From: Hydrolagus colliei
Taxonomy: Eukaryota
NCBI GenBank assembly: GCA_035084275.1
Contig: CM068749.1
Coordinates: forward strand, 9,114,001 to 9,178,000
DNA: 64,000 nt
Reading direction: 5' to 3'
Shown here: positions 190 to 62,100 of the stretch, piece by piece
Layout of the letters: the number at the start of each line of letters is the position of its first letter
How positions within the stretch are numbered: position 1 is the first letter of the stretch
Notes under the pieces: model-generated
The model's database searches: none
What the model saw: the letters and a program-made list of their open reading frames with translations, nothing else
Told to the model about the DNA's origin: nothing
Program-made: the position numbers and the translations under genes

Positions 190-1842
190 AGGAAATATGA
201 GTGGAGCTCTCCAGGCAGCGCTGAAAAATCCCCCAACTAACACAAAGAATCAGGCAGTTAAGGTAAGGCTGCATTATCTTTATATGAGCCATGACTGGCT
301 GTTTCGTGCAGGTATTGGATGGCTATCAAAAAACGAAATTGAAGATTTAAAATTGGACTGTTTTCCCTACAATATGTTCAAAGTTTAAAAACTAATGAAA
401 ATCTTAGTTATTAGTTCCAATCTGCCAAACAGCAGCTGGCATTCTGTCCATTTGATGTTACAGTATCTTATTCGGATATCATTGAGTTTAAAATCTGGTT
501 TGCCTGAGTCAATGCATGCTTTAAATGTAAAGGCAAGAAGAGTTGGAGTGAAGCTATGAATGGTCCAATAGAATTACTGCCCTCACATAGATTCAATCTA
601 TTCATGATTTGGCAGCACATTGTGGCATGGAGAACTTCACTGTTCATATGAAAAGGTAGACGGGCTCATTAAATTTAATTTGATCAGATACTATTGATTT
701 TGAATGTTTGAATTTTCCAGAGTTTTGGATTGAAATTGAGCACTTTCCATTTCTAGGACCGGGCGGAAAATACTGTTCTGAAGGTTTTGACTTCATTTAA
801 AAGTAACGATATTGAAAAGGCAGTTCAGTCCCTCGACAAGAATAGTGTTGATCTCCTGATGCAGTATGTCTACAAAGGGTTTGAGAAGCCATCGGAAAAC
901 AACAGTGCACATTTACTACTATGGCATGAAAAGGTAAGAGCTGCTTGGTATTCATATATCCATTGATTTCTAATATATTAATCTGCACCATTTAAAGGAA
1001 GGCTCTAGCCTCTGTATTTATTAACAGAATGGTCTTGAAACATTTTATTTTCTAACCATAAGTCAAAATGTTGATTTTTATTCATATTTAGCAGATGGTA
1101 TTGTATATGTACATAGTGAGTGACAATCCCAAATCATGGATGTTGTCTCAACAATGCAAGTGGTTCTCCTGAGATTTCCTACCAACTTTTTTTCAATATC
1201 TGTTGGCCTAGCTCAACAGATATTGTTGGGCTTGAACCCACAACTTTCTGACTCAAAGGCAAGTCTAAGCTGAAACTGCAATGCAAGTGGGCTACAGTAC
1301 AGGAGAGACGGAGGGTGGGGGGAATTCATTATCAGAGGTGCTATGCTTTGGATGAGGTGTACATAAAGATCTCATGGCACTACTTGAAAAGAGGAGGGAA
1401 TTTCTCCCAGTGTTTTGGCCAACAATCCCTCAAATAAAATTGTTCACTCATTCCGAGACTGTGGGACATTGCTGTGTGCAAACTGCTGCTTTGTTTAGCC
1501 CAGAAAATACAGTATCTACTTGACAGTATATCCTGTAAAGTGCTTTGAGACATCTCAACAACATAATAAGGCGCTTTAGATTATTATAATATTTCTGTCT
1601 CTGATGAGACTCAACCCAATATCTATAGGAATTACTTTAAAGTGGTTAGTAATTTATACTTCAGTGAGAAACTTAGAGATGCTGGTGGAATATAGATTAG
1701 AGGTGATTTTTCCCTCCAATACTAAACATCTTGGACTCTCTGAACAAATTATTAACTGGATCTTTTGTGTTTTCTTCAGACTTTAGCAGTTGGAGGAGTG
1801 GGAACTGTTGTAAGAGTTCTAACAGCAAGGAAAACAGTTTAA
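190..1842 (+). CDS. ARPC5: Actin-related protein 2/3 complex subunit 5 (p16-Arc), last three coding exons; 5' exon outside the window
   Basis: Exons 190-262, 757-933 and 1780-1842 (TAA) join in frame to ...[24 protein letters not shown]|[59 protein letters not shown]|[20 protein letters not shown]. The two downstream introns are [17 protein letters not shown] and [13 protein letters not shown], plus the NCF2/SMG7 neighbourhood, favour ARPC5 over ARPC5L. Confidence 0.95.
1335..1590 (+). mobile_element. DeuSINE-type SINE (Deu domain plus L2-like tail), degraded
   Basis: Contains GGATGAG...AAAGATCTCATGGCACTA...TTCTCCCAGTGTTTTGGCCAACA...GTGGGACATTGCTGTGTGCAAA, typical of the Deu domain. Related copies at about 9000-9330, 11930-12170, 12740-12965 (-), 14485-14735 (-), 18360-18655, 21730-22120, 34990-35125 (-) and 43180-43365 (-). 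Boundaries approximate. Confidence 0.7.
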
Positions 1843-7082: not shown

Positions 7083-7640
7083 GGAGTCCTGTAGCTCACT
7101 GCAGAACACTTGCCTTACAAGCGAGAGACTTGGGTTCAATTCCAGGCAGGGCAAAACCTTGAGCAAGTTTCCTTACTCCACACCCCTGATAATAATCCCT
7201 GATAATAATCCAGTAATAAATTGATCATCTCAATCCATGACTTTGTGGGCACAGCTGTGCGCAATTCATAGAATCATAGAATTGTAGAATTTTACGGAGC
7301 AAAAGGAGACCATTCAGCCTATCGAGTCTGTGCCAGCTCTTTAAAAAGAGCAATTTAATCCCACTCCCCACTTCCCATTCAGGGCAAAACCTTGGGCAAG
7401 TTTCCTTACTCCACACGCCTGACAATAATCCCTCAAGAAAAAAGCACAATAATAAATTGGCTGCCACGTTTCGCTGGCAAAATATGCAGTCAATTCACTT
7501 TACAGTATCTTCTGTGAAGTGCTTTGAGATGTCTTGAAGACGTGAAAAGCACAATATCAAATGCAAGAATTATGCTATGTCCCACAAACAGTTGTGGATT
7601 GAAGTGACCAGTTTTATTATTGTTTTTTTTCTTTCAGAGC
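7083..7640 (+). mobile_element. Cluster of tRNA(Val)-like-headed SINE pieces with a nested CR1 3' end (7267-7380, minus strand)
   Basis: Head GGAGTCCTGTAGCTCA...CCTTACAAGCGAGAGACTTGGGTTCAATTCC has A/B-box-like motifs. CATAGAATCATAGAAT is the reverse complement of a CR1-type (ATTCTATG)n tail. Confidence 0.7.
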
Positions 7641-7748
7641 TGTAAATGAAGATCCGACTGGTACATTTTCTTGACCCTCACACCAAAGGAATGTAAATAT
7701 TCTCTGATTGAACTGTAACCATCCACACCTATCCTTGCTTGGTGCTTG

Positions 7749-10700
7749 TTAACTATCCAGAATCTCGCTCAATAAGTCACTATTGGCCGAAACCCATTGC
7801 CTGAAGGATTGCAATTCAGGATGCAATTGCAGGCTTAAAGTCCTGTTCATTTTCTGACCTCCTCTCTTCCAGAATTCAAACATATTCCCAAGGTCCTGAG
7901 AGCCTGCTCCGCCAAACTTCTCCACAAAGTTTCTGACCGAAATCTGTCACAAAGGGAAAACAAAAGTAAAACTTTGTTCAGAGCATTGAACCAAAAAGGA
8001 CCAGGTTGGGTGGGGTGAGTGGGTCAGTGAGCAAAGTATTGCTTTGTGTGGATTCATGCTGTTAGCATTTGGTTTAAAGAATACAGTAAAACTTGTTCAA
8101 AGCTGATCTATATAAATCCTACAATTACCTAAGTCTCCCCCAATTTAACTTGGGGCCAATCTGCCAAAGCCATGTTGAATTTACTGCAACTTATGCGAGT
8201 TTCACATAACTTTGGATAAGTCATATTAAATGTCTGGTCCCAACTGGTATGATTTATGTGAGGTTTACAAGAACTACAAAATTACATTTTTGGAGTGCCT
8301 TTCATGTCGGGAGAATGTTTACTGTACCATGTTTGTAACACCACAACATAGAAAGTCATAGCACAGACATAAGCCATTTGGCCCAACTGGTCTATTATAC
8401 TTCACATGAGCCTTCACAATAACAACTTGTATTTACATAGGGATTTTCATGTTTTATATTTTTAAAAGTTTCAAAGGATTAACTATTGGTAAGGGAAGAA
8501 AAGAGGGGCTGGCGATTTTAAAATGGTGAGATTCCTCCACATCTGTGTGATTTTTTAATCTGGTCTTCACAATGTGTTAACCTATGCTTTGAATTACAAT
8601 AACAAAATTACATTGATAGAGTGCCTTTCATGTCCCAAGGAGCTGAATTACAAGGATTCTGTTTAGATTCTTGGTGTTTTAAGTATTTGTTCTCTGTCTG
8701 TTGGGTGTTTTTTTTCTTCCAGTCTTTAGTTGTCCATCCATAAAACTTGGCAACAAAATCTGGACTAATATATCAACTGATAGTTCAGAATGTGCTGAGA
8801 GCAGATAGGATCTGTGCTTTTATGCGTCAATAAAATACCAGCAACTTGCTCTTTGTCAGGTGTTGTTGACAGCTTTCTCTACTTTACAATACCCATGTCA
8901 GAAACATCCAGAAATGTGCATCATCCTGGATCAGCTCATACCCTCTCAGTGACAAGGTTTAGGGGTTGAGGACTTTGAACACATGTAGTCCAGACTGACA
9001 CTAATGCAGTTATGGGGGTGGCACTGCAATGTTGAAGGTAAACATCCTTTGGATGAGACATTAAACTGAAGTCCCACCTGTCTAATTAATGGAAGTTAAA
9101 GATTGTTTGGCACTATTCAAAGGAGATTGGAATTTGTCCCTGTGTCCTGGCCAATAATCCTCACATAAAAATTAATCATTCAGTTTGTCTCTGTGGGATA
9201 CTGTGTTACTGTGTGCAAACTAGCTGCAGAATTTGCCTGCAAAATAGAGTCACCATACTTTTACAGTATATCCTGACTTCCTGAAATTCCATCCTATTTG
9301 AGAAGAGCTATAAATTCAAGTTGTTGTAATGTGCTCTGAATTTTGTCACAACACTTAACGTGGAAATTCTGTGATCATCTTTGAGATGGTTTGACAACAG
9401 GATAAGGCACCGTATGAAAATGCAAAGATGAATTTGTTTTGACTGTTGTTTTCCTAAGGTGGTTATACCCGGGAATCCTTAATCCTTTTGGGGTCCAGGT
9501 GGTGGCTGAGGATTTGTCCGTATTCCTGGATTTGCAGCCTATCAGCAGACAGAAAGCAGCTCTTGCCTATCCAGCGCTTGGGGGCTTTAAATAAGGCTGT
9601 CACGATCGGACCAATCTGCTTGATGCTTATTCCGTCCATGGCTGTATCTCCCATTGGGATAGCTGTAAGCAATCCACAAGTTATAAGAAGCACACCATTG
9701 ACAACTTGGACATTTCCACTTGGCACCTCATACAATAACAACATAATAATAATAATCCTTGCATTTGATATAGTGCTTTTTTATGTCTTCTAGATGTCTC
9801 AAAGTGCTTCACAGAATATACTCTAAAGTGAATCTACTATATAATCGTGGGCGAAATGCAGCAACCAATTGTGCACAGCAGTGTCCCACAAACTGTCGTG
9901 GATTGAAATTACCAATTTATTATTGGGGGGATTTTCTTGATGGATTATTATCAGGTGTGTAGAGCAAGGAAACTTGCCGAACATTTCGTCTTGCCTGGAA
10001 TTGAACCCAGGTCTCTCACTTCCAAAGTGAATACTCTAACCACTGAGCTATAGGACTCCGCTTGTATTTACATTGCGTTTCACACATGGCATGGGATCTT
10101 TGAACAGGCAGACGAGACCTCAGTTTAATGTCTCATCCTCTGAAAGTGCAACAGCCCATCTCCAGCACAGCATTCAAATGTCAAGTCCTGATGTGTGGCT
10201 TGAACCTACAATGTTCTCACTCAGAGGCGAGAGACCTTTCACTGCACCAGGCTGACAACAATGACTGAATTGAAGGGAATTGTTTCCATGTCGTATCGCT
10301 CTATGTAACACTTTGTAAACTACTCACCAATTTTATAAGTGTCTTTTCCAGCTGGGGTTGGTTTGAAAGTTGTAAGAAAGTTTTCAAAGTAAAAGGGAAC
10401 AATTATCTCAGTCTTGGGCAAAGCGATTTCATTCATGTAGTCATTAATGCAAGCCTTTGCATCCATATGCCTCGCTGGCAGGCTGTACTTCCTGTGGACG
10501 TGCTGGGCTCCATTGAACACAACTTGCTTGATGTTGTGCTTCTTGCACATGTCAGCGATCCTGTAGCCTTGTTGGATTTCAGTCTGTGAATTCATAATAA
10601 TACTCTATTATTCATTATTATTATTAATCAGTAATGACATGAATGAAGAGAGAAAACCTTGCCAGGTCTTATTAAAACTAATAAAACAACACAAGCATTC

Positions 10701-11394
10701 GCCTACAAATTGAAACCAAACCACTTTACAACGTATCCTATGAAGCGCTTTGAGGCATCACAATGACTTGTCATTTCTTTCTCTCCACACAGCAACCATT
10801 TGTCTTTTTATTTCACCCACAAAATACAGTTAATTCAAATGGCACTTTATCCTGTGAAATGCTTTGTGACTTCTCAACGACATGATGAGCTACTTATATG
10901 AAATGCATTATTATTACTATTTGCTCAGTGCCATTCTACACAGAAACTGTTCATTTTAACATGTTGGTTCAAAACACGGTCTTTACTGCAAAAAATCTGC
11001 AAAGCGCTTTGAGACGTTTTGACACTTAAGAAAAAATGACCAGACTTTCAAGCAAGCGAATAAAAACACGGCTGTTGTACTTCAGCTTTATAAGCCTTTG
11101 GGAAATCAACATTAAAGTGGTGCGACTGACCCTCAGAGGATCTGTGGTGCTGAAATCTGTATGGGTGACAACAAAGCACTTGTGTACATCCCTCAGAGCA
11201 GAGTCGATGGTTGAGGTTTGGTTGTAATCCACGGCCACAGTCTCTGCCCCGGAGGCCTGCAAGTGCCGAGCAGCTGGGTTGGTTAATTCACTCACTGCCG
11301 CGCGCAGTTTAAAGTTGCCGTCCTGGAGCAAGGCAGAGGCAACCTCATTGCCTTCGCTGCTATCAGCGCCAAACACCACTACCATCTCAGCCAT
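7749..11394 (-). CDS. NmrA-like family protein (NMRAL1/HSCARG-related atypical SDR, Rossmann fold), 4 coding exons, 302 aa
   Basis: Exons 11394-11131 (MAEMVVVFGADSSEG...DPLR), 10583-10328 (TEIQQGYRIAD...HMDAK...PFYFENFL...YKI), 9662-9469 (AIPMGDTAMDGISIKQIGP...KDSR) and 7943-7749 (ISVRNF...DLGNMFEFW...SFRQWV...ILDS*). All introns are GT-AG with phases 0/1/0, giving 909 nt with no internal stop. Colinear with NMRAL1 motifs (VVVFG..G, H.D.K, P.YFEN, P.GD..MDG.S...GP, DL.NMF.F, QW). The last exon is missing from the ORF track. Confidence 0.92.
9747..10060 (-). mobile_element. Near-full-length tRNA-headed SINE in an intron of the NmrA-like gene
   Basis: Read on the minus strand: GGAGTCCTATAGCTCAGTGGTTAGAG... 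head through to an (ATT)n tail. Confidence 0.8.
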
Positions 11395-11772
11395 CCTCTG
11401 GGGAAGAAAGAAAGAAGATTGACATAAGAGGTTCGGATTTTTTGGTGGGGTCAGTCGGCTGTCTGACACAAGTGGAGACCTATCACCATGTTTAAGACTG
11501 TTAAAGCAACTGAGAGTTACACCCAATAATAATCCTTCCATTCGATATAGAGCCTTATCACATTGTTGAGACTTCTCAAGGCACTTCACAGAATACTGCA
11601 AAATGAATTGACTGTATATTTTGTGGGCAAAGCATGCAAACCAATTGCATACAGCAATGTCCCACAAACAGTCGTGGATTGAGTGACCACATTATTATTA
11701 TCATTTTCTTTTGAAGGGATTATTACCCCCGGAAAAGCGATCTGCGAATCGAGTTCCATGTATAACACCTAC

Positions 11773-12716
11773 GTTTGGAAATTTTCCTGGATGTGAAATA
11801 GAATGAATTCACTCTCCCAAGAACAGTGCACCCTTCTTATAGAAGTCCAGAGAGAATTAGCCATAGGTTGGTAACAGCCCAGGCTTGGGGTACCCAGAGT
11901 GTGCATGGGTCACGGCTGGAGTTTAACATTTGGTGTTTTAGTTGGTTGTGGATTCAAGTTCACGGGCGAGGCTGACACTTCAAACCTGTGTTTGTGCATT
12001 GTCACCCATTAGATGAAACACTAAACCAAACTGCCTTTTGCCTGTTCAGGGGGACATTCAAGATACAGTACCTTGGCAGTTTTTGAAAGAGAAAGGGGAG
12101 TTTCTCCCGGTGTCATGGCCAACAACCCTCATTTAATGGCAAATTGGCTACTGTGTTTGCCTACAAATAACCCAATAAAATCCCATAACGTGTTTTGATT
12201 TCAAGGTAAGGCACTATATCAAATATAGGTTAATATTATTCATATCATAATAATAGTATTTATTTTTGCCATGAACCTTCTCTGTCTCTAGGCAAAATTG
12301 CATACTGTTGCATATACAAAAAAAAAACCTCATTCCAGATTTGCATGGGGAGGAAGGGGATGTGGTGAGACCCATTGAACTGGACAGAGATTGCAGTGGA
12401 TTCAAACCTTTTTTTAAAAAAAAATTAGAGGCGAAATCATGTGTACATTATCATACATTTGCTCCAAAACTCACCGTGACACTGACTTGCTTTGTGTCTT
12501 TGCTAACTCGGAATCTGTTGTTACCGGGGCTACTTGGGTGCCACTTCCTGAACTATTGCTTGTTTCCACTGTAGTCAGGGAAACAGCAAGTCAAAGCCAG
12601 ATTTCCAAGACATTAGCCAATGCATCGACTGCACGCATTGCTGGGGGTGTGCTGTTATTAGACCCAATGCATCAGCTACAGTTTGCATACATCAGTGTCT
12701 CACAGACAGCCATGGA
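11773..12716. promoter_or_regulatory. Putative divergent promoter region shared by the NmrA-like gene and NCF2
   Basis: Minus strand: TATAAGAAG (11841-11833) and a donor AAC|GTAGGT at 11773, a candidate non-coding exon 1; the coding exon has an acceptor 3 nt before its ATG. Plus strand: ETS/PU.1-type CACTTCCTG (12542-12550) and donor GA|GTAAGT at 12716, a candidate NCF2 5' exon; acceptor TTTCAG ends at 13332. Confidence 0.4.
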
Positions 12717-13364
12717 GTAAGTGAGCAATTTTATTTGGAGAATTGTTGGCCAGGACACCGGGAGATACTTTTAGGGAAATGATTTACCTTTATAAACTTG
12801 TCTTAATAATCTTAATGATCCACTTGAACAGACAGGTGGGACCGGGATTTAATGTTTTACCCAAAGGATGGCACCTCCCCCACCAAACCCCAATACTGTA
12901 TTGAAATGTCATCTTAGACTATGTTCTGATGTGGGGCTTGAACCCACAACTTTATGACTCAGTCAAAGGGTGCAGACAGATTTAAAAGGGAGACAGGGCC
13001 TTAGTTTAACGTCTTATCTGAAGGACTTCTAGCTCTCCTCTAGCTCTCTCATGCTTCGCAGGAAGATAAATGTGCAAAATTCTATAATCCAGGCCTTTTC
13101 AAATGCCAAGCAATCATCGACTCGTGACTTTATTATGCAATGATAGTGGCTGACAGTTTCCCGTACATTGTAACTGTGGTTCATTCCTAGTTATGATCAC
13201 ATATCCTGTAATGATTTTGTCACTTTTCGGTCAGGGTAGGAACCCATTTGAAAAAAAGAGGTAGTTTATATTGGCCATTATCACTGCATTGGTAAGGAGT
13301 TTGCTGCCGAAAGCTTCGGTTCCACCTTTCAGCCTGTGTGCAAGTTTGACACGCAAAGTTAACC

Positions 13365-16300
13365 ATGGGTTTAATGGAGACCTTAAAGCTATGGGATGAA
13401 GGGATCGCTGAGGCAGACCAGGGAGAATGGGCAACTGCACTGAAGATATTTACTTCAATAGACGAGGCCAGCTCCAAAATCTGTTTCAACATTGGCTGCC
13501 TGCACCTTTCACTGGGAGATCTGCAGGAGGCTCAGAAAGTAAGTGAGTTGGAAGGAATTTTGTTTGTGTGCTACAAGCCCATTCTCTGCAGAACTATTGC
13601 GGCCACCTGAAACTGAGTCCTGTAGCGTATTGGTGAGAGCGCTCACCTCACAAGCGAGAAGACTGGGTTCAATTCCTGGGCAGGGCAAAACCTTGGGCAG
13701 GTTTTCTTACTTCACACGCCTTTGTCTAAGCGCTCTGAGATGCCGTCCTTCGTGGAGGGCGCTATATAAATCATTGTTGTTGTTGTTGTTGTTGTCTACC
13801 TATCAGTAAGTAAGAACCCAGTTAGTCGATTGGAGGATCACTAACTGTAATAAACCCTTGCGAAAAAATGTGAGGGTGGGTGTGAGTATGGAGAGCAGTG
13901 AGAATTTTTTGTTTTGTTGTATGCATGTTCCGACGTGAAAGGCGCTGTACAGAAGGAATTTTGTTGTTGTTGTGTTTTTTTTCATGTTATAAAAGATTGT
14001 GAAACCGCTACAGCTGATGCAATAGTAATCCTTGCATTTTAATATCGTGCTTTTTGCATCTTCTAGATGTCTCAAAGCGTTTCACAAAATAGACTGTAAA
14101 GAGAATTCACTGCATATTTGTGGGCGAAACGCGGCAGCCGATTGTGCACAGCAGGGTCCCACAAACAGTCGTGGATTGAGCGACCAAATTATTATTTTAT
14201 TTTTCTCTTGAGGGATTATTGTCGAGTGTGTGGAGTAAGGAAACTTGCCCAAGGTTTCGCCCTGATGTGTTTTAATGTGAAGAATACCTAAAGCTGCCAA
14301 CATGTCCAGTCTGGAGTTTTCAAGTCACAAAAGTTTTCAGGTTGCTGCAAACAGTGTGTAACAATTGCACAAGTCACTGAGTTTAGTTATGTAACCGTCT
14401 TGTGGACACTGCAGAAACACCCGAAGCCTCGTTCATTTCCATCCACAAATCCAACCCGTGATATTCAATTTGGGGGGGGGGGGCATTTGTTGGCCAGGAC
14501 ACTAGGAGAAACTCCTTTCTCTTTTTGAATAGTGTCATGGGATGTTTAATGTTCACCTGAACTGGTAAACGGGACCTTGGTTTAACATCTCATTCAAAGG
14601 ACGGCATCTCCGACAGTCATGCAGCAGACTTCCAACGCTGGAAAGTGAGCCTGGACTTCAAAGTCCTGACATGGGATTTGAACCCATAACCTTCTGACTC
14701 AGAGATGAGAGTGCTACCAACTGAGCCAGCCTGACATGCAAAACAGTGTTGTCCTAACTGAAATGGAGGAAATTGTATATTGTGTCAATTTGTGTGGACT
14801 GATCTCTTTCCCCCTCTCTCTCTCTCTCCATTTCCAGGAATTTGATAAGAGCATCTGTAAGGATGAGCATTTGGCAGTGGCTTTCTATCAACGTGGGATA
14901 ACTTTCTTCAAAATTGAAAAGTAAGCTGCTTCTGCACATTGGAGAGGTTTGTGTGAGCTAGGTGTGCCATGCACTACTTCATTGCTTGTCAGACAAACAG
15001 GCTGAGCACTGCACTGAGCTGGGCTAAGGAAAGCTCTACCTTTTGACCCTCAAGAATTGCATTCAGATTGATTTTGCTTAGAGAGGATGGAGATGTTCTC
15101 TTGAACGTTTGGTTAGAGACATGGTTGTGTGAGGGACAAATTATATTTTCGGGCAGGACAATAAATCACATTGGCTTTGCCCGCCAGTCCAGGGTGTACA
15201 ATTCTCCAAAACTGATTCTCATTTTTATTTGGTTTCCATGCCGAACAATGTGGGCGATATCATTAAGTTAGGAGGTATTTTGTTATTCAAAATTTCAACA
15301 AAAAATTATAATTTTGAGGCAAAGGTAAAACTTGTTGAAGGAAAATCAATCGAATCAGATTATTTTGGAAAATAATTTTGGAAGTAGGACATTCAGCCCA
15401 ATGCAATGTTGAAGGATGACATTCGACCCACACTCCACACGCCTCTGTTTACCTTGCAGTAAGTAGGAACCCAGGTGTTCCAGGGGTAATTACCCTTCAA
15501 GAAAATTAACTTGGTCACTCAGTCTACGACTGTTTATGGGAAACTGCGGTGTGCAATTGACTGCCATGTTTCACGCATAAAATACAGTCAATTCACTTTA
15601 CAGTATATTCTGTGAAGCACTTTGAGCTGTCATGAAGATGTGTTAAGGCATGATACCAAATGCAAGGATTATTATTAAGAATTATTTCATTTGATATTTC
15701 CTTAACATCCGCTTAATCTATAGTGATTTTGAAAATGCCAAAAGTATCCCTGGAATACTGAAGCCATTTCCCTCCTGTTTTCCTTTTCTGTTGCCTTCCA
15801 GGTATGAAGAAGCCATTAGAGATTTTAAGGACGCATTTCATCAACTTAGAGGGAATTTACTGATAGACTACCACCAGCTAGGCCTGAGATACAAGCTGTT
15901 TGCTTGTGAGGTACATGGATTTATGAATTGTTTGTATTTTCATGCTGACAGAAACTCTTTCATGTCCTTTTATTTTATTCATGTTAATTATGTGCTCCCA
16001 CAAGTCACCAGTGGTAGTCCTGGAGCTCAATAGTGAGAGCACTCGCCTTACAAGCGAGAGACCTGGGTTCGTTTCAAGGCAGGGCAAAACCTTGGGCAAG
16101 TTTCCTTACTCCACATGCCTAATAATAAGCCCTCAAAAATAAAACAATAAATTGGTCATTTCAATCCACGACTGTGAGACACTGCTTTGCACAATTGGCT
16201 GCCGCGTTTCACCCACAAATACACAGTCAATTCGCTTTACAGTATATTCTGTGAAGCGCTTTGAGACGTCTACAAGATATAAAAAAGGCAATATTAAATG

Positions 16301-22300: not shown

Positions 22301-25300
22301 CAGCCCCAGAGAAACCAAGCTTGAAGGTGACAGGTAGGAGCTGTCTCTCGCCTGCTCTTTGCTGTGACTTTTGGATGTACAATGGGTTGGAAGTTGCGCA
22401 TATCAAACACAAAACGGTTGCAAATTGGAAAACATCAAATCCCGACTGTAGAACGGGGAAAGAACAGGGCAATGGGTATCGCATGACTAGAGGATGTGCA
22501 ATTGTGGGAGCAAGCAGTGAAAATCACAATACAGTTTGCTTCAGTGGGGACTTGCTGAGTTTGACATAATGGCTTTTCTTAGAATTTAATGGAACTATTC
22601 ACACAATGGCTTTTGTCTTTCAGGAGCAAATCCAATCACAGGCAAATCCCAACAGACAGGGGAACCTGCACACAAGGTTCAGGTAAGGAGGCCAAAGTGT
22701 ATCCATAAATAGGACCGTTGTATTGTCGTCCCCCCGACATGAAAGGTGCTCTACAAATGTAATTTTGGTGTTATTGTTGTATCGTGTCCGGCCTTGACTA
22801 GGCTAACTCCCTACACAACGGACCTCCCAAATCTTCCCTCTACAGGCTGGATGAAGGCAGCTTGTTATTGTAGTTGTACCGATGAGCTGTCCCTTGATTG
22901 CACATCTTCCTCCAATTATACTCGTGGAGTAAAACTGGACAGAGAAGGAATACAAAGGCTGTAAAGATAACTGGAGCTGTCAGTGCCCTAAGCTATGTTC
23001 TGGAATTGCTGGCAGCTCAATACACAACGTTGGGAGTGGGTCTATGACAGGTTGCTAATGATTTCTTCTTTGTGAGGCAGCACTGGATGCAACGCACACC
23101 AAAACCTTCCATTGTCAAAGTGCACTTCACGTACACGGTGGCTTTGCGTGTGAAGCCAGGGATAACGCTCAACGAACTGCAGGCTGCTATTTGCAAGAAA
23201 TTCAAACTAACCGAGTGCAGATTTGGTTTGAGGTACGATCAAGGTTTTTCAGATCTTCTCGATGGCTTCATCAAAATAGGAGCTTTTAGAAACATCTTTT
23301 TGTTGTGCTCCTCAGATGAACATATAATAATAATCATAATCCTTGCACATGATATAACACCATATCATGTCATTGAGACATCTCAAAGCGCTTCACAGAA
23401 TATATTGTAAAGCTGTTTGACTGTATCTTGCAGCTGAAACGCAGCAGCCAATTGTGCACAGCGATGTCCCACACACATTCATGGATTGAGTGACCAATTT
23501 ATCATTATTATCGTACATGTTGATTGCATCCTGTGCATAGTAACATTAACTTGCACTTATGCAACCTTTTATACCTGCAAATGAACATCTTGGAATGTTC
23601 CACAAAATACAGTTGATTAGAAATAGAGTGAAACTTTTGATATATAGGCAAACCATGGCAGCTAATGCAACATGAGCAATTCATTCATTAGAATTGGTTA
23701 ACGTGGATTAGAAGGGGAAAGGAATATAAATGAAATTAAATTGAAATACCAGGTTTCTTGAATTAATGATCGCTTTTCACAACCCATAAATAGATGAATT
23801 CCCCGCCACCCACCCCTCCCCTTCTTCTTGCCCAGGTATCCGGAAGCCTATCATAGCTCGCGTATTGGCACGCCACAAGATCACTTATTGAGCAGACTAA
23901 AAATCAAACTAGAGACTGTATGTCTAAATTGGTCTGTGCATTTATTGCCTCAGACATCAGTGAGGTTGACCAGATTTCTTTGCCAAGTTTGAAAACCCAT
24001 AGACTTATCATTAATTTCTCATAACAATGGCATAGCAACTTTCACATTGACTTTGATAAAGTACTATATTTACTGCTTATAAGTTAGGAGGTGATCGATC
24101 AGAAAAGCCGGGTCATTTTATGTGTAAAACGTCACTTAATGACCTTCTATGTGCAACCTGTTTGCTTCATGTCGGAGAATATAATCAATTCTTTACTATC
24201 TCTTATGGTTCTTCCCATCAGTTACAAGGAGAGTGATCAGCTTATTCCCATTACCAATGAAACCAAGATGAAGAATGCGTGGAGTCAGTCCAACAATGGA
24301 CGTATGACAATTTGGTGTAAATATCTGAAGGTAATAGATTCAATACAAAACTAAATTTATAATAGCGGCTTTCACATTGGGATTAAGCATCTGGGAAACG
24401 TACACCAAGCATCTGGCAAACGTACATTGTAAATGAAGTGAGTTTGTAGAAATTGAGAGCCTATTGAAGCTCTGGTCTGAATCTCCCCTACATCTGCATC
24501 ACCCTCATCCCTGCCGAGGTGCAATGTCCTCCAGGGGATCAGTTTCAAAACCTCCAAAGCTTTTACACCATCCTATCTGTGAAATTTTCTCGTCATATAT
24601 CCTAACCCCTCGTTCATCCCTATTCCGATGCCACTTTATAGTCCACCCCCCACCCCGCCCACCCATGCTTCACTTTTGTAAGCTGAACACAAACACACCT
24701 TTGCTCTCTGAAACTCTAATTGAAAACCATCTTCACCTTGCTATTTCAAACCGCTTTCTAAACCCCCTGAAAAATTATTTTGACTATTCTTTGAAACATC
24801 TCTAAATTCCTCTTACATTATTATTCATCTAAATGGGGTAATTATTGACCAGAATAGATTGCCAAAAAGGGTGGGTGAGGCTGATGGTGTTGTGTGGTGT
24901 GGAGGTGGGAAATAGAGGTAATTCAGGAAAGGTTAGATCAAATGGGCTGAAAGGCTTTGTTTATCCAAACCAATCTTGTGATGATCCAGGTAGTGGCACT
25001 ATATGACTACGAGACCTCAGAACCTGACGATCTGCTCTTTCAAGAGGGTGACATCATCCACATTTTAGCACAAGGTAAGAATGAAGGAATTGCTCGCCTA
25101 AGATTTCAAATCGAAAGAGGATGGAAGCGTAGCATGTGTATTACATGTCTGTTCTTTCAGTTGAATTTCTAAAACAGATTAAAAAATACAGAACAACAGT
25201 GTTCCAGTCATAGATCGGGTGACCATATTATTATTAATTTTTTTTGAAGAAATTATTACCCCAGGAAAAGCAATCTGCTAATTGACTAATGACCGGTTCC

Positions 25301-29187: not shown

Positions 29188-32100
29188 TCAGTGTGGTGGG
29201 TTCAGTGTGCCGATTCCTCGCTGCTGCTTCTGTTTCTGCTGCATTAGCAGCTGCTCCAGTGCGGAGGGTCCAGGGTGCATCATTGAACTGGACCAGATCG
29301 ACTGTAAAGAAAAAGACAAAAACCTCTTTAGGCAACATCTTTCGGTTATGATTTACATAATGATGCTACTTCAGTTATTTGCTGAAGTTACAAGCATTCC
29401 CCTAAACTCTCTTGGTAAATAAGATACAGACTCTTGGAATGGTATTGTGGGTTTAAAATTTAGGGCATAGAGTAGAAAAGTGTAGCAATAATGCAACTTT
29501 TGCATAAATCTTGGGTAGACTAATTAGAGTAACGCGTTCATGTGTTCGCCTACAAATAAGCATGTCAATTCACTTCACAGTATATTCTGTGAAGCACTTT
29601 GAGCTGTCTAGAAGAAATGAAAAGCAGTACATCAAAATGCAGCGATTATTATTTTTTTGTGTAATCACTTCAAGGATGTTAAGACCTTGGAATGGGTGCA
29701 GAGGAGATTGACAAGTATGATATAAGGAATAAAAGAGTATAGTTCTGAGGAAAGACTGAATAAGTTGGATTAGTTTTCACTGAAGCAAGGAAGAATGAGA
29801 GGAGGCCTGATAGAGGTATTTAAAATTATGTGGGATTTGATAAATAGGGAGAAGCTAAATTCCACTAGTAGAGGAAATCAGGGATTAGAGGATATACAAA
29901 CAACAACAACAACAACAAATTACATTTATAGAGTGCCTTTCACGTTGGGAGGACGTCCCAAGGCGCTGCACAGGAGGCGTGTGACCCGAGCTGAGAGGGG
30001 AGTGTTTGGGAAGGGGTAAAACACGAAGGGGAGGTAGAAAAATTCGGGGTGGAACAAAAGGCACGATCGAAGAGGAAAGTCTTCAAACCGGCCTTGAAAG
30101 AGGAAAGGGAAGAAACTAAATGGAGGGATTGAGGGATGGCATTCCATAGGGTGGGAGCGGAGAAACTGAAGGCCCGGCCTCCGATGGTGGGGCGGTTCGG
30201 GTGGGGGGTTTGGAGCAGGCCACGTCCTGTTGAACGGAGGGTCCGGGTGGACTTATAGGGGGAAAGTAGATCGGTTAAATAGGGCGGGGCAAGGCCGTGT
30301 AAGGCCTTGTAGGTGAGGACGAGGATCTTGAACTCGATCCTCCGGAGGATGGGGAGCCAGTGGAGACGGGTGAGGGTGGGGGTTACGTGGTCGCGGAGGC
30401 GGGTGCGGGATAGTACACGGGCTGCAGAGTTTTGGATGACCTGCAGCCTGTGAATGGAGGAACTGGGGAGGCCGACGAGGAGAGAGTTTCCGTAGTCCAG
30501 CCGTGAGGTGATGTATGCGTGCACGAGTGTTTCGGCAGCGCTGGGGGTAAGATAATTGCGGAGCCTGGCAATATTGCGCAGGTGGAAATAAGCGGTGCCG
30601 GTCAAAGCGCGGATGTGGGGGAGGAAGGAAAGTTTTTGATCGAACATGATGCCGAGGTTCCTGATTGGCCTTGTGAGGTGGAGAGTGCAGCCTTGGATGT
30701 TGAGGCTGGCAGCGCCCGATGTGCGGAGGCGCTGGCTTGAGCCAATCAGGAGGGCCTCAGTCTTACTCACGTTCAATTGCAAAAAGTTGTCCCTCGTCCA
30801 GGACTCGGTGTCGGACAGACATGCTGTCAGAACATCGATGGTTTGGGGGTTGAGGGATGAGGCAGAAAGGTACAACTGGGTGTCGTCCGCATACATGCGG
30901 AAATTTACCCCATGTTTGCGGATGACGTCGCCCAGAGGGAGCGTGTAAAGGGTGAAAAGGAGGGGGCCTAAAACAGAGCCCTGAGGGACGCCGTGAGAAA
31001 CTGTGTGGGGGTTTGAAGAAAAACCGTTGGAAGAAACAAAATGTAAACGGTGGGTCAAGTAAGAATGGAACCAGTCAAGGACTGTGCCTTGAAGGTTGAG
31101 GTGGGAGGAAAGACGTTGAAGGAGGATGGTGTGATTGACTGTGTCGAACGCAGCAGACAGGTCAAGGAGGACGAGGAGGCAGAGGGAGCCCTGGTCACAG
31201 GCGGTTAGGATGTCATTTGTAACCTTGAGCAGGGCAGTTTCTGTGCTATGGATTGGGCGGAAACCTGATTGGAGGGGTTCAAAAAGTGAATGAGTTGAAA
31301 GGAAAGAGCGGAGCTGGGAGGCAACCACTCTTTCAAGGACCTTGGATAAAAACGGGAGGTTGGAGATGGGTCGATAACTTGATGGTTGCGACGCATCAAG
31401 GGAGGGTTTCTTCAGGATAGGGGTGATGGTGGCTGTTTTACGGGAGGTAGGGACGGTGCCTGAGGAGAGGGAAAGGTTAATGGTGTCAGAAATGAGCGGG
31501 GCTAACAAATGGAGCTGGGTGCGGAGGAGGGGGGTGGGGATGGGGTCCAATGAGCACGTGGTGGGTTTCATGGAGGTAATTGTTTTTGTGACTGAAAGCG
31601 GGGTGGTGGGGTTGAAAGTGTGAAATGGGGTTGAAAGTGTGAAAACAAGAATTTAGAAGATTCCTCCCACCCCCATACATGGTTTTTGGGATATGAAATC
31701 TCCTGCAGTAAGGTGGTAGAAGCAGAAACATTCCTCCTAAATGCCAGGATGCAATTTTAATTTGGATTCAGTTCTATGTTTTTGAAAAGTAGCTTTTTAG
31801 ACCAACCATGATGATGACAAATGCTATCACCAAATTGTTCAAACTAAGTTAATTCAGTAGAGTCACTAACAAGGTCTCTATTCGGAAAAAAATTAAGGCA
31901 AAAGAAGGACCGACAGAGATACAGACAGTGACATGTGTGGCCTGCTGGGATTTTGTAACTGTCTGTCAGGAGGGAGACCAGGATGATATGTGGTGAGATT
32001 TTGGTGCTTAAATTCTTGATGGATTACCTACTGTATGAATGAAATCTTCTCCCGAATAAGCAAGTGAGTCAGTATGCAGTGCATATTTGTGGAGAGAGTG

Positions 32101-56100: not shown

Positions 56101-59100
56101 TAATAGATTTCTTTGCTCACCTCTCCAAAGCCTTAGAAAGCGCTTTCTGCAGATTAGTGGAAGCAGCTGGGAAAGGAAATTTGACAGCAATACTTCTGCA
56201 ATAGTAGAAGATTGTTGTAAGGTGATCACCTTTGGAGGAAGCCAGGATTGCCAGCTGATTGTATGGCTGACCTGAAATAGAAAAGGTGATCAAAGTACCA
56301 TAATAAAATAGGACATATTGATCATTAGGTTGTGGCAAAGATTACATTGAAAAAACACTGCTCCATTTTAAACCACTTATCCTACATACCCACTCATCTG
56401 GGTTTGTAGGACTACCTACCACAAGCATTCCTTCAACACCTGTTTCAAAACCTTCCTCTTCAACCTTGCCTTCCCTCCACTCCTCCTGATTCCAACCCCA
56501 GCTCGGGTTCAATCCCTAACTATTGTCCAGAAGACATGAAAAGTGCTATATCAAATGCAAGGATCACTATTATTGTTATCATCATCCAGCATCTTAGTAC
56601 ATCCTCCCGACGTGAAAGGTGCTATACAAATGCAATTTGTTGTTCCTCATTTTAAAAAAAGAAATTGAGTTTGACAATCAAATACCATTGCTGGCCACCC
56701 ACCATACACTTGAAAGGGTGGAAAATAATAAAGGAAATTAAAATCATGCCTTATGATGCATTTGCATCAAACAATCTCCCAATGCTAGATAAGCCTAACT
56801 GCTAGATATGAATTTTAAAATGGTATTCAATGCATTGTAGCTAAAGTTTAACTTTACTCTGAGTAACTGAAATAAAGATGGATAATAAAGGTAAAGCTTA
56901 CCATTGGATGGAACAAGTTGAGCTGCATGTCTGTAGTAAGACTCAGCCTGGCTGGTTTGATTTCTGTATCGAGCTATCAACCAAAGAACAAAAATATCAG
57001 GGAACTCACATCTACATGGCTGACAAGAAAAGCGTATCCCTATATTACTTGCTCACCAATTTACTTGCGTAAAATTAGAATTCATTCCTCACATTGTTCA
57101 TCCCTGTAGTCCTCTTATTTGGTCCATTGATTTACGTCCTCCCGACGTGAAATGTGTTATACAAATATAATTCTGTGTTGTTGTTATTGGCACATTACAG
57201 AAAGTTTATGATATGAACTTGGCACCTAAAACCGTTTTCTTTAGAGTAGATTGTTGGAGAAAACAGAAGCTGTCATTCCGTCAATCTGGGCTGGATCAGA
57301 ATTCTGGACCCAAGATGCTGCTCTTTCACCTCTATCACACTGCTTGTTTACTCATTACTCACTTGCTAAAACAGTCAAAGAAAACTTTATGGAAGTACCT
57401 GCAAGTACACTGCATGCCTTTCCAACAATTACTGGACAGGCATTAAACAATCCACTTCCTAAAATGAGTGTACTGAAAAGTGCCCCTACCCCCACAACCT
57501 CATGACTTTCCTTTTCATTGAAGGATATTCGAGTAGCATTAATCTAAGTTTTCTGAACACTGCTAAATAGGAAGGGAGAATTTTTATAAACGTCGGTAAT
57601 TTCTCATAAACTTCTGACATAATATATAGTATTCAAAGTTGGAACTTAAGGATCAGCGAATGCAGAATTAGAACACGATTCAGTAATCTTGACCCCTGCT
57701 TCAAATACATAATTGACTTGAGGATTCATGACAAGTTCCTACTCCCGAGTGACAGATCACATAATCAGATAATATTACAGCATAGGAGGCCATTCAGCCT
57801 ATCATGCTTGTGCCGGTTCTTTGGAAGAGCTAACCAAATCAGTCCAACTCTTCGCTCTTTTCCTATACCCTTGCAATTTTTTCCTTTTCGAGTACCTATC
57901 TAATTAATATTTGAAAGGTGTTACTGAATATGCTTCCACCACCCTTTCAGGCATGTATTCCAGACCATATCTAGTGACTCTCCCCCTTGGGAGTACGTAC
58001 ATATTATTAATCCCAGGCCTGGTTGTTTACAATAGGCTGCTGACAATCACTTCAATATTTCATGTAAATATTGAATTGGCCTAACAAAATTTACTGACAT
58101 CAGTGATTTTGGATATGTTTAAATTCATGTTTATAGTCTTCAAATGTGCAATATTTAAGATTAATTGTTCACAGAATTAAAACGCTTTGACAAGGTATTA
58201 GAGGTTAGCTATGAAATTCTAACCCAATAAAAGGAAATTGTCAAAGAAATAAAATTGTCAAGGAGTAAAAATCTACTTCCAGGAACTGTAGTTTTTTTTA
58301 AATGAAGAGTGCAAAATAAACATGCAATATCTTGTGTTCACCAGCACTAACAGATACAACATAATCACATGGAACCTTCAGCTAGCTACTCATACTTCTA
58401 ATTTAGTCATGACTAACTCAGTAAAATATCTCTCTGTTTAAAGGGCGAATTCTGACACTGTCTCCGCAAGAATTGACTGGAAAGAGATTTGAGGGAGTTG
58501 AATTACTTGAAAATAGTCATTAACACAGGATGCTTCAGCCACACAGCCATGCCCATTGTTGAATGAGCTACTCCTCTAAGACAATTTCCCAATGGGATCA
58601 TTCTACTATGTAATATCTGAAATTTAAATACAGGCTGTCAATTTTCCGAAAAGCATCTTAAACAGACTCACATGGATGGAACCACAGAATATTCCTGAAC
58701 TTTTAAAAGCTATAAATTGGCTGGTTTTCATTTTGACACAGACATGTTACTTCACCACATTTAGATAATTGTGTCATCCCTTTTCCTACAGTGAATTGTT
58801 AGTAGGTTAGCAGTCTTTAAATATCCAACAAATTGGTGGGCATTGCCCATTCCATCATATATATATTGCCACTAACCATTGCTTTAACATACCTATGTCT
58901 CCGAGATGAACAAGGCAGTGCTGGCAGATATAAGAGCAAGAACTAGGTTGGGGCTTCACAATGCCACTGGTGCTGCACTGTTTATTGCTGATAATTCCTA
59001 GCTCTGAGGATTTAACTCGGCAGGGAAGGTCCACGTTGAAAACTGTGCACAGCTCCTGCAACAACTGAAAGGAATTTAAAAATAGGTAATATTATTTTTT

Positions 59101-62100
59101 TTAACATTCAACAATCCGACTTTAAGTCAAAATATAAATTATTTTCATCGCTGAAATCAAGATCACAGAATATAGGGTTATATTTCCGTGGTTCTAAGCC
59201 CCAATAGCTTTCAAACTCAAAAATTCTCTTAGCTAGCTATTCTCTTATCCAAGTTTCCTCCCAATCAGCATTTTCCTCTGTTCGTCTATCTGCCAACTAA
59301 ATATTTCCAGCCCCCTGAAGCTCAGATTAAACTCATTATCACAGTTTATCAAAGCACAAGTTTTATCTCAGCACTTACCTGTGTGTAGAAGCCACTAGCT
59401 GCCTCCAAGAAGAGTGAAAGGTTGGCCTGTATCTCGCTACGATTTGGATTGGCTCGATTCTTGGCTTGACCCTGTAGTGTAGTAATTTGATTTTTGAAGG
59501 CATGATTCCAGCTGTATATCAGGAAATTAGAAGAGATTAATTCATGGTACAACACCACATCAAGAGAACTATACGCAAACAATATTAAAAGCAAGTTTTG
59601 TTTAAAAAAATTTAAAACACTAAAACAAAGTCTTAAAATTTTTTCTTTTTTCAGGAGCTAAATACTGAACTGGTAATAAAGGAGGATCCATGAATGAAGT
59701 AATTCCCTTCATTACATTACTCATTCTTTCCTTTAATTTACCTTAGTCCCTTAATTTGTTTATAACCTTTCGGACATAAGATGTTTATGAAAAAAAATGA
59801 ATAATTTGGCCCTTGATTTAATTACAATAATTTTATTGCTCCATTTCTCTTTTCTTAGCTGATTAAGTCAGATTTATGGGTTTGGACAGCTGGAGTGGGT
59901 GATAGATAAAAACCGACACGGAAAGAACTGTATAGAAGGAGTAAAGATAAGGAAATAAGCAACATTTCTACAACATAACTCAGTTTCAATTTACCAGATT
60001 TTGGACATTCTGCAATGTTCTATTCTTAGAAGTCTTCAAAGTCAGAAGACTAACCCTGGTTAACAGAGCCCACGTTTGATAGATCTCTAGAGTCAAGGAT
60101 GAAACTTTTTGGGGCTTCTATAATTTAGATGTACTAGAAATCAACATATGGATATGTCGGCAATGAAATATTATCCCCAACGAAACCATTTTTACATTCC
60201 TAATGCTAAGGTGCAAAAACGAAGACATCTATTTTCACCTGAAACTTATTAGATACTTACAGGTCTTGCTCCACCTTCTTATCCAGTGCATACTCCAAGT
60301 CTGTGACCAACATTTTCTGGTAAAGGTCCTGCAGAGCTTGTCTGGATGTCCAGACCTCAGCTGTACCCAGCTTTGAATCTGCTCAGGCAAAAGAGTTTGG
60401 AAAAGAACATGTATAAAAACAGTGCAAATATTAATAGCAAAATCGGAAAGATCCCAGCTGATAACCTAGAAAAATGGAATACTGGTACTCTTCTCTATTC
60501 GCCGTCGCAGTATACATTATTTTGATTATATGTTGTTAGTGAATTAATATATAGTTAGAAAAAGCAATTCGAAAATTGGATTAATTGAAGGGATATTAGC
60601 TGATTACATTTTATATTAGTTGTTTAGTAAATATATAAATAAGGTAATAAATACAATTGAGAACACTTACTGAGGAGATGGCTGATGTGGTCAGTGAGCG
60701 GGATGGGGTACGCATTTACTCATTCATAAATGTACAACTTTAGAAAAAAGTGTACAACGGCACAAACACATACCAGCGATCAGCTGTTTGGGACCGCGGC
60801 GTGAGGGAGACCCCTCTGGGGATCCATACAAGAGGTAGGTAATGCCGCCCGTTCATCTGAATGACTCCGCCCCCTCGCACTCACCATATAAACCATCTCG
60901 AGTAAGTGTTCTCTCAATTGTATTTTTTACCTTATTTATACATTTATTAAACTTTAATTTTCAAAACTATAGTGTTGTTTTTGGTCTTTATTTAATATTA
61001 GTGTGTGAAAATTTAGACCAGAAATGTACAGAAGGAACATAACCCCTATTGATAGCATTAGGGCCTATGGTAATTTAGGTTTTGCTATCCTTTGTTTCAC
61101 TTAAAATCGCACTTTACACGAACACATCCCCAACGTTAATTGAGGAGTCCCAGTATCTACTTTCAAGCATTAATTCACACACCACCACACACACTCCCAC
61201 CAACCCCCCTCACCTTACCCCACTCACACTGCTACAGAATTTCTAAACAACAAAGACACATTTGTATAATATCTTTCATGTCGGGAGATCATCCCAAGTG
61301 ATGGACACTCAGTGTTTCGGATCCAAGGGCGAGGCGGAGGGATTGCGGGATGGAGTTCCAGAGGTTGGGGGCACAGGAGCTGAAGGCTCGCCCACCAATG
61401 GATGGGTTGGGGGACATGGAGCAGGCCAGAGCCTGCTGAGCGGAGGGGGCGAGCTGGGTGGTAAGGTGATAAGATGTAGGGTGGGGCAAGATTGTGGAGG
61501 GCTACCCTGAGGAAGAAGACACTACCCTCAGTGTATCCATGAATAGTGATGCTGCAAGACATTTTGATATTCATCACAATGTTGTTTCATGTTAGATCAT
61601 TTTCCAGAGGAAAGAGCCTATGAGGTAACTTCAGCCAGTCCAAGCTGCTCCAATCAAAACCATGTTTACCTTCAAAGCTAGATCCTACAGCTTTTGATGA
61701 TGGTATAATATTTGTATTGTGGATCATGACCTGGGGAATCTATCCCCTAACCAACTGCTCAACTCTGGTACCTCAATACATCTGCCTGAATTCAGGGTCA
61801 CACGTCTCAGTTACTCATCACTATGTAGTTAGAGTAGTTATTACAGTAAAAACCCGTTTATCTGGCACCCCTGGGACCTGGCGAATCCTGGTTAAAGCAC
61901 CTGCCGGATATTCGGCCGAAAATGCAAAAAAAACAGTATCGATTTTTTTCAATGCATTTTTCCGGATAAATTCCAGTTAATTGAATGCAGACTTTTTTTT
62001 TGCGATGCGGTTACATGAAAGTTACGGTTGATCGAGTGCCGGATAAATGGGCTTTTACTGTATAAGGCCCCATTCAAATCAGATGCCCAACATATGCAAC

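Follow-up and report, generated by a model that had tools for sequence, protein, structure and literature searches.

An NmrA-like gene beside NCF2 in Hydrolagus colliei appears to belong to a vertebrate lineage distinct from NMRAL1

We analyzed a 64,000-nucleotide stretch of the Hydrolagus colliei genome (NCBI GenBank assembly GCA_035084275.1, contig CM068749.1, positions 9,114,001 to 9,178,000 of the forward strand; hereafter the window, numbered from its first letter) and found that an NmrA-family gene on its minus strand, which lies head-to-head with the p67phox gene NCF2, is very likely an intact and selectively constrained member of an old NmrA/HSCARG-like lineage, distinct both from NMRAL1 (the human HSCARG gene) and from a second, therian clade of NMRAL1-type genes. 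We call the lineage of the window gene clade X. The sequence comparisons described below indicate that it is a third and older vertebrate lineage, neither NMRAL1 nor the therian second copy.

The gene occupies positions 7749-11394 and, when read on the minus strand and translated exon by exon, consists of 302 codons (88+85+1+64+64) in four coding exons with GT-AG borders and no internal stop codon (Table 1). The Pfam NmrA family (PF05368) was matched by exon 1 alone with 38.9 bits and by exon 2 alone with 33.5 bits, both above the cut-off of 27; exons 3 and 4 gave no Pfam match singly, and both matched HSCARG. Human HSCARG/NMRAL1 was the top solved structure for all four exons, with exon 1 aligning to residues 5-80 (E 9e-10), exon 2 to residues 90-168 (E 9.5e-11), exon 3 to residues 178-232 (E 2e-9), and exon 4 to residues 246-291 (E 0.007). 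A Callorhinchus milii protein from NCBI, P0165, is likewise 302 residues long, spans all four exons end to end with matching exon joints, and is identical to the window translation at 75 of 87, 80 of 85, 56 of 64, and 57 of 64 positions in exons 1 to 4, respectively. These results bear out the preliminary description of this stretch, made from its letters, which had proposed an intact four-exon NmrA gene of 302 residues on the minus strand. The exons were searched, translated, and aligned singly, and P0165 (89% identical) represents the whole protein in the trees and the fold work. An acceptor-like site that ends 3 bases before the ATG makes it probable that one or more non-coding 5′ exons precede the ATG exon; in the shark and paddlefish orthologues P0166 and P0170, N-terminal extensions are joined immediately before the equivalent Met.

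Relatives of the gene were collected by searching exon 2 alone exhaustively against representative proteins, and then by using full-length relatives in two word-indexed searches and one profile search. The first 31 of the 120 matches listed in the profile search belonged to clade X (E ≤ 1e-88; 27 named species and two clusters), and a gap followed, the next match having an E value of 1e-70 and 38% identity. The clade X members in this search came from chimaera, sharks, rays, bichir, paddlefish, bowfin, gar, coelacanth, and lungfish, as well as from six elopomorph teleosts plus tarpon, three caecilians, and two salamanders. Over 301 residues, the window exons are 89% identical (268/301) to the Callorhinchus protein, 77% to that of Heptranchias, 58% to that of Latimeria, 56% to that of gar, and 55% to the clade X copy of Pleurodeles; the corresponding value drops to 38% with amphioxus, and five NMRAL1-type proteins range from 32% to 37%. 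The best match of each of the four exons lies in clade X. Moreover, Pleurodeles and Ambystoma each possess a clade X copy and an NMRAL1-type copy, located on contigs of different length and hence on different chromosomes.

Among predicted proteins and word-preselected candidates, we found no clade X member from mammals, birds, squamates, crocodilians, frogs, or non-elopomorph teleosts, in line with the earlier proposal of a pairing absent from mammals. Every clade X member is named "nmrA-like family domain-containing protein 1" in NCBI or UniProt, and no paper separating a third vertebrate NmrA-like lineage, or linking such a lineage to NCF2, was found among the Creative Commons-licensed papers in PMC and the bioRxiv preprints. 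Clade X therefore appears to be uncharacterised, as the preliminary description had also supposed.

Four turtle entries (Terrapene, Chelonoidis, Macrochelys, and Platysternon; P0009, P0015, P0153, and P0195) fall into clade X on a stem of 0.84 and have scrambled internal sequence; as judged from these features, the turtle copies are degenerate. In UniProt, the turtle entries bear the name NMRAL1, except for one that is called "Aprataxin and PNK-like factor". A turtle preprint (2026) reports NMRAL1 loss in turtles with chicken and crocodile as references. Because the turtle proteins that UniProt names NMRAL1 are degenerate clade X members in our tree, both lineages may be gone or disappearing in turtles.

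The relationship between clade X and NMRAL1 was examined by phylogenetic analysis. In a carefully built tree with 66 rows, the 21 rows of clade X were recovered together with a support of 100/100, and the branching within the clade followed the species tree. Clade X grouped with genes from bilaterian invertebrates (amphioxus, echinoderm, mollusc, annelid, brachiopod, and nemertean) with a support of 100/99 (32 rows), while the NMRAL1/2-type clade (18 rows) was placed outside, its exclusion being supported at 100/100. A quick tree of 83 rows agreed with the 66-row tree. Forcing clade X and the NMRAL1-type proteins together cost 41 log-likelihood units and gave p = 0.0155 in the approximately unbiased (AU) test. 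Two indels part the types in the same way: clade X and the invertebrate genes have a T-x-T-D-F...D-P-L segment that is longer by two residues after strand beta-4, and they are without a two-residue "GG" insert before the H-x-D-x-K segment. On this evidence, the single "NMRAL1-like" gene of bilaterian invertebrates is shown to have its jawed-vertebrate counterpart in clade X.

These results leave little room for a reading of the window gene as a plain, fast-evolving NMRAL1 (HSCARG) orthologue that moved next to NCF2, an explanation we consider very improbable. Such a view would be in keeping with the NMRAL1-type labels that NCBI and UniProt give to all clade X members, with HSCARG being the top solved structure for every exon, and with the fact that a separate NMRAL1-type protein from cartilaginous fish was not seen among the search returns. 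However, the identity of the window protein to NMRAL1-type proteins is no higher than that to the amphioxus protein, and the trees, the AU test, the indels, and the salamanders that hold both types all speak against it; plain NMRAL1 orthology was rejected on these grounds. The grouping with plain NMRAL1 orthologues that the preliminary description had named as fatal to its proposal of a separate NmrA paralogue was thus not obtained in the NmrA-family trees, and the proposal stands. An NMRAL2-type identity was also rejected. The NMRAL1-type clade contains a therian-only subclade that includes the horse protein P0193, and clade X lies outside that clade.

The trees also provided several observations on other members of the family. 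The "NMRAL1" proteins of amphioxus, echinoderm, mollusc, annelid, brachiopod, and nemertean that group with clade X are P0004, P0007, P0008, P0011, P0020, P0025, P0028, P0031, and P0050. The therian-only second NMRAL1-type clade (P0193, P0284, P0291, P0294, P0298, and P0299) stands beside a clade of NMRAL1 proteins from monotremes, tenrec, sauropsids, and amphibians, and we presume it to be the intact form of the gene that is pseudogenised in human (NMRAL2P). Frogs have many NMRAL1-type copies on one contig, with at least five in Eleutherodactylus coqui (P0189-P0192 and P0216; a contig of 210,109,471 bases). NMRAL1 duplications have reportedly been described in Pristimantis (PMC11342244), and the multiple frog copies are in line with this.

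We then compared the predicted protein with known members of the family. Like human NMRAL1/HSCARG (PDB 2exx, 2wm3, 3dxf, and 3e5m), it has an NmrA-family Rossmann fold and about 300 residues, and its H-x-D-x-K segment, which is nearly invariant in clade X, aligns with that of HSCARG, as do its F-E-N and P-M-G-D/E motifs. An AlphaFold model of P0165 had a mean predicted local distance difference test (pLDDT) score of 69.7, with values of 87-96 in the N-terminal half, and its top eight fold matches were HSCARG chains (E 1e-20 to 2e-23; template modelling (TM) scores 0.59-0.70, the best 0.66-0.70). The two-domain Rossmann fold of HSCARG/NmrA was thus found on P0165, which served as a proxy 89% identical to the window protein.

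The nucleotide-binding loop differs. The glycine loop of the window protein reads G-A-D-S-S-E-G rather than the canonical GxxGxxG, and HSCARG has GGTGAQG at this site. The loop of clade X as a whole conforms to G-A-D/E-x-x-E/Q-G: of 23 clade X protein rows, 22 have Asp or Glu at position 3 and one, Pleurodeles, has Gly, and the central Gly is retained in three (Callorhinchus, Latimeria, and Erpetoichthys). By comparison, nearly all NMRAL1-type and invertebrate rows keep G-x-[TS]-G-x-Q-G-G. The window protein also has Ser and Thr in place of HSCARG Arg37 and Tyr81, two residues that we take to contact NADPH. Neither equivalent is kept in the window gene, and the HSCARG residues are those mutated in PDB 3dxf (whose title gives the R37A mutant) and 3e5m, according to the titles of these entries. 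Because the glycine loop and the Arg37-aligned residue are both changed, the "redox sensor" label for the window protein is doubtful on sequence grounds.

The invertebrate "NMRAL1-like" proteins (amphioxus P0004, sea urchin P0028, oyster P0031, Lingula P0050, Owenia P0011, and Tubulanus P0007) resemble clade X in length (300-304 residues), in their grouping, in both indels, and in the T-D-F...D-P and R-H-x-D-A-K motifs. Unlike clade X, however, most of them keep the canonical loop and an Arg at the Arg37 position, whereas clade X sits on a long stem (0.53-0.60) with a rewired loop. The therian second clade (horse P0193, bat P0284, and opossum P0299) is comparable as another NmrA-like paralogue of vertebrates that some lineages have lost or retain as a pseudogene, but horse P0193 matches HSCARG over 297 residues (E 1e-106) and has a canonical GATGAQGG loop. 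Aspergillus NmrA (PDB 1k6i, 1k6x, 1ti7, and 1xgk) offers a parallel for the loop, since it is likewise without the canonical glycine loop (title of 1xgk) and is a regulator, not an enzyme, according to the PDB titles, as proposed here for clade X. It is a distant relative, however, with a TM score of about 0.55, 17-22% identity, and 352 residues including a C-terminal extension. As the fungal protein also does without the loop, loop loss is not fatal to NmrA-family membership, and the window gene is, by its predicted protein, an NmrA-like family member with a notable loop change.

These features suggest how clade X proteins might act. A clade X protein would be a Rossmann-fold regulator like HSCARG and NmrA, acting without catalysis and through protein contacts, and its dinucleotide site differs from that of HSCARG. 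We regard the chances as evenly balanced that clade X is such a regulator with weak or altered NADP(H) binding; the conserved G-A-D loop suggests a cofactor behaviour different from that of HSCARG.

The integrity of the gene was assessed against DNA contigs of another individual (run X1), which cover all four exons and have an even depth of about 65 across the introns and the spacer toward NCF2, with the listed joints running from repeat to repeat and none of them a splice joint of the gene. All seven single-letter differences between run X1 and the window in exons 1 and 2 were synonymous, an outcome with a chance of 5e-4 for random transitions. Since every one of these differences is synonymous, the gene is selectively constrained; in addition, 51 alignment columns are invariant across 21 clade X orthologues spanning jawed vertebrates. 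Complete clade X open reading frames (ORFs) were also found in two Logan clusters, on contigs of 2,097 and 1,695 bases; because the coding exons of the window gene span about 3.6 kb, these shorter contigs should be intron-less and transcript-derived.

The same data bear on the opposite explanation, namely that the window gene is decaying or without function, for example a unitary pseudogene still forming or a product of misannotation. Points in its favour are the turtle members, with their 0.84 stem and the scrambled N-terminal part of exon 2, the loss from the window loop of the central Gly that Callorhinchus retains (GADGSEG), and the outcome of a search for RNA runs of Hydrolagus colliei, which listed one run, X1, not recorded as RNA; this outcome also counts against our interpretation as a whole. 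The 302 open codons, the canonical GT-AG borders, the length and exon joints shared with the Callorhinchus model, the synonymous differences, and the invariant columns nevertheless make this explanation hardly credible, and a pseudogene was rejected on this evidence. Because the loop is conserved in its changed form across clade X, over the whole age of jawed vertebrates, the sequence argues for a kept, altered function rather than decay.

The differences between run X1 and the window were unevenly distributed. Over about 4,954 uniquely covered bases of positions 7700-13600 there were 18 single-letter differences, and seven of them fell within the 520 coding bases of exons 1 and 2. These seven lie at positions 10443-11290, six being T>C on the coding strand, and the 547-base intron between the two exons has at most one (Fisher p 0.0015 and 0.004). 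This excess over the intron is not explained by purifying selection; possible sources are an old haplotype or gene conversion in which a second copy or a retrocopy was the donor.

Several further points weigh against an intact clade X gene distinct from NMRAL1 and are best considered together. The group examined in the AU test was named after the tree had been seen, and its p value of 0.0155 is moderate. Deep nodes among the cnidarian, bivalve, and NMRAL1-type rows were weak (31-91 in the quick tree), and a coral protein with NMRAL1-like motifs, P0094, fell outside the NMRAL1-type clade, so that any order of the old duplications is tentative. The missing cartilaginous-fish NMRAL1-type protein, among the proteins returned, counts here as well. 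The absences of clade X from other vertebrate groups are soft in that unannotated genes and pseudogenes are invisible to protein searches, and the profile search missed the turtle proteins P0009 and P0195. As to the protein, the C-terminal half of the P0165 model was poor (pLDDT 41-57), and a changed loop is no proof of lost binding, since the fungal NmrA without a canonical loop was crystallised with NAD and NADP (1k6x and 1ti7).

If clade X is a separate lineage, as we consider very likely, it has consequences for how the family is read. In the HSCARG/NMRAL1 literature, the vertebrate family consists of one gene and a human pseudogene, whereas the present results point to a third, older lineage that databases label NMRAL1 in at least 27 species. 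The searches yielded no clade X member from the usual model vertebrates (mammals, birds, frogs, and non-elopomorph teleosts), which would explain why the lineage has not been studied. Transferring HSCARG function by orthology to the "NMRAL1" entries of fish, sharks, and invertebrates is unsafe, and calls of NMRAL1 gene loss, for example in turtles, need the two lineages kept apart.

Table 1. Features of the NmrA-like gene and its surroundings in the window
Feature	Position	Strand	Details
NmrA-like coding exon 1	11131..11394	-	88 codons; ATG 11394-11392; donor AGG|GTCAGT; Rossmann beta1-loop-helix, GADSSEG replacing GxxGxxG
NmrA-like coding exon 2	10328..10583	-	85 codons and first base of a split Ala codon; acceptor ...tcacag|; donor TTG|GTGAGT
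NmrA-like coding exon 3	9469..9662	-	2 bases and 64 codons; acceptor ...ttacag|; donor CGG|GTATAA
NmrA-like coding exon 4	7749..7943	-	64 codons and TAA stop; acceptor ...tgacag|
Candidate splice acceptor	11395..11425	-	long pyrimidine tract and cag; ends 3 bases before the NmrA-like ATG
High-copy short interspersed element (SINE) in intron 2 of the NmrA-like gene	9748..10063		depth up to 4.7 million
Spacer between the NmrA-like and NCF2 ATGs	11395..13364		1,970 bases; GC 0.416; CpG observed/expected 0.36; no N
NCF2/p67phox first coding exon	13333..13538	+	acceptor-like AG 13331-13332; ATG 13365; donor AAA|GTAAGT after 13538; TPR matches
ORF with the C-terminal SH3 exon of NCF2	24957..25169	+	SH3_1, E 7e-9
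ARPC5 exon	787..963	+	P16-Arc, E 6.6e-18; tail-to-tail with the NmrA-like gene
SMG7-like gene, EST1 and EST1_DNA_bind exons	56120..59594	-	E 2e-18 and 2e-4; tail-to-tail with NCF2

The window gene has ARPC5 and NCF2 as its neighbours, in which it differs from NMRAL1; human NMRAL1 is divergent from HMOX2. NCF2 exon 1 aligned to residues 1-58 of human p67phox (PDB 1e96/1hh8, E 8e-13), a protein-cluster search with this exon returned generic TPR clusters only, and the exons of NCF2 extend from position 13365 to about 25100. The EST1-domain gene on the far side of NCF2 is consistent with SMG7. The P16-Arc, p67phox, and EST1 matches thus agree with the ARPC5-NCF2-SMG7 setting given in the preliminary description, and its distance of about 2.0 kb between the NmrA-like and NCF2 ATGs was measured as 1,970 bases (11394 and 13365).

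The head-to-head arrangement raises the question of whether the two genes form a functional module, in which they would share a bidirectional promoter and be co-expressed in phagocytes, with the NmrA-like protein sensing redox state or restraining the NOX2 burst. Besides the short distance between the ATGs, acceptor-like sites precede both ATG exons, so that the 5′ exons of the two genes are likely to be found within the spacer or on its far side. In a single-copy stretch of the spacer, 12428-12720, the motif scan matched an ETS/PU.1-like core once (minus strand, 12549) and CCAAT twice, and donor-like sites occur at 12474 and 12703 on the minus strand and at 12717 on the plus strand. In addition, one report (PMC3602244) describes human HSCARG as lowering NADPH-oxidase output. 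The effect described there goes through NF-kB and repression of p47phox, however, and not through p67phox.

Other properties of the spacer also argue against a shared promoter. It is CpG-poor, with at most 6 CpG per 200 bases, and has no CpG island of the kind that is usual, though not obligatory, for the shared promoters of bidirectional pairs; nor did the motif scan of its 1,970 bases detect a TATA or NF-kB match. The motif matches in 12428-12720 are single matches in 2 kb, as chance would give, and were not counted as evidence. More than half of the spacer falls into high-copy depth bins of run X1, the low-depth, single-copy parts being about 11837-12033, 12428-12624, and 13019-13364. The high-copy depth sets in some 50 bases upstream of the NmrA-like ATG exon (at 11443), and a SINE copy of the same family as that in intron 2 was aligned just upstream of this exon, at 11525-11717. 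The altered loop and the missing Arg37 equivalent further weaken the notion of an NADPH sensor, and what supports a module here is adjacency in one genome.

The adjacency of the NmrA-like gene and NCF2 is real, and a chance neighbourhood is its default reading. Shared regulation of the two genes seems unlikely to us, and the complete module, with its common promoter and its brake on NOX2, distinctly improbable. One could extend the idea to an ancestral jawed-vertebrate head-to-head pair of NCF2 and clade X, co-expressed in phagocytes, in which the clade X protein would limit or time the burst, its rewired loop giving it a tuning unlike that of HSCARG; this partner would later have been lost in amniotes (with turtles in mid-decay), frogs, and most teleosts. 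This, too, we hold to be a long shot. Only a conserved arrangement would make the link to NCF2 relevant to how control of the NADPH oxidase evolved.

Several features of the surrounding DNA were also noted. Copies of one SINE family, in both orientations, occur at 7119-7460, 9748-10063, 11525-11717, 13610-13721, and 14021-14265; part of the element looks tRNA-like by eye, and its summed depth in run X1 reaches 4.7 million, whereas single-copy DNA has a depth of about 65. A retrotransposon between NCF2 and the SMG7-like gene has a reverse-transcriptase ORF of 543 residues that is open on the minus strand at 29940-31571 (RVT_1, E 1e-35), where GC content is high and GC skew strong. Long open frames on both strands at 41515-42209 and 44385-45146, in introns of the SMG7-like gene, consist of GC-rich low-complexity repeats of the Ser/Pro/Leu type; they match bins in which GC and GC skew are raised and are probably simple repeats, not genes.

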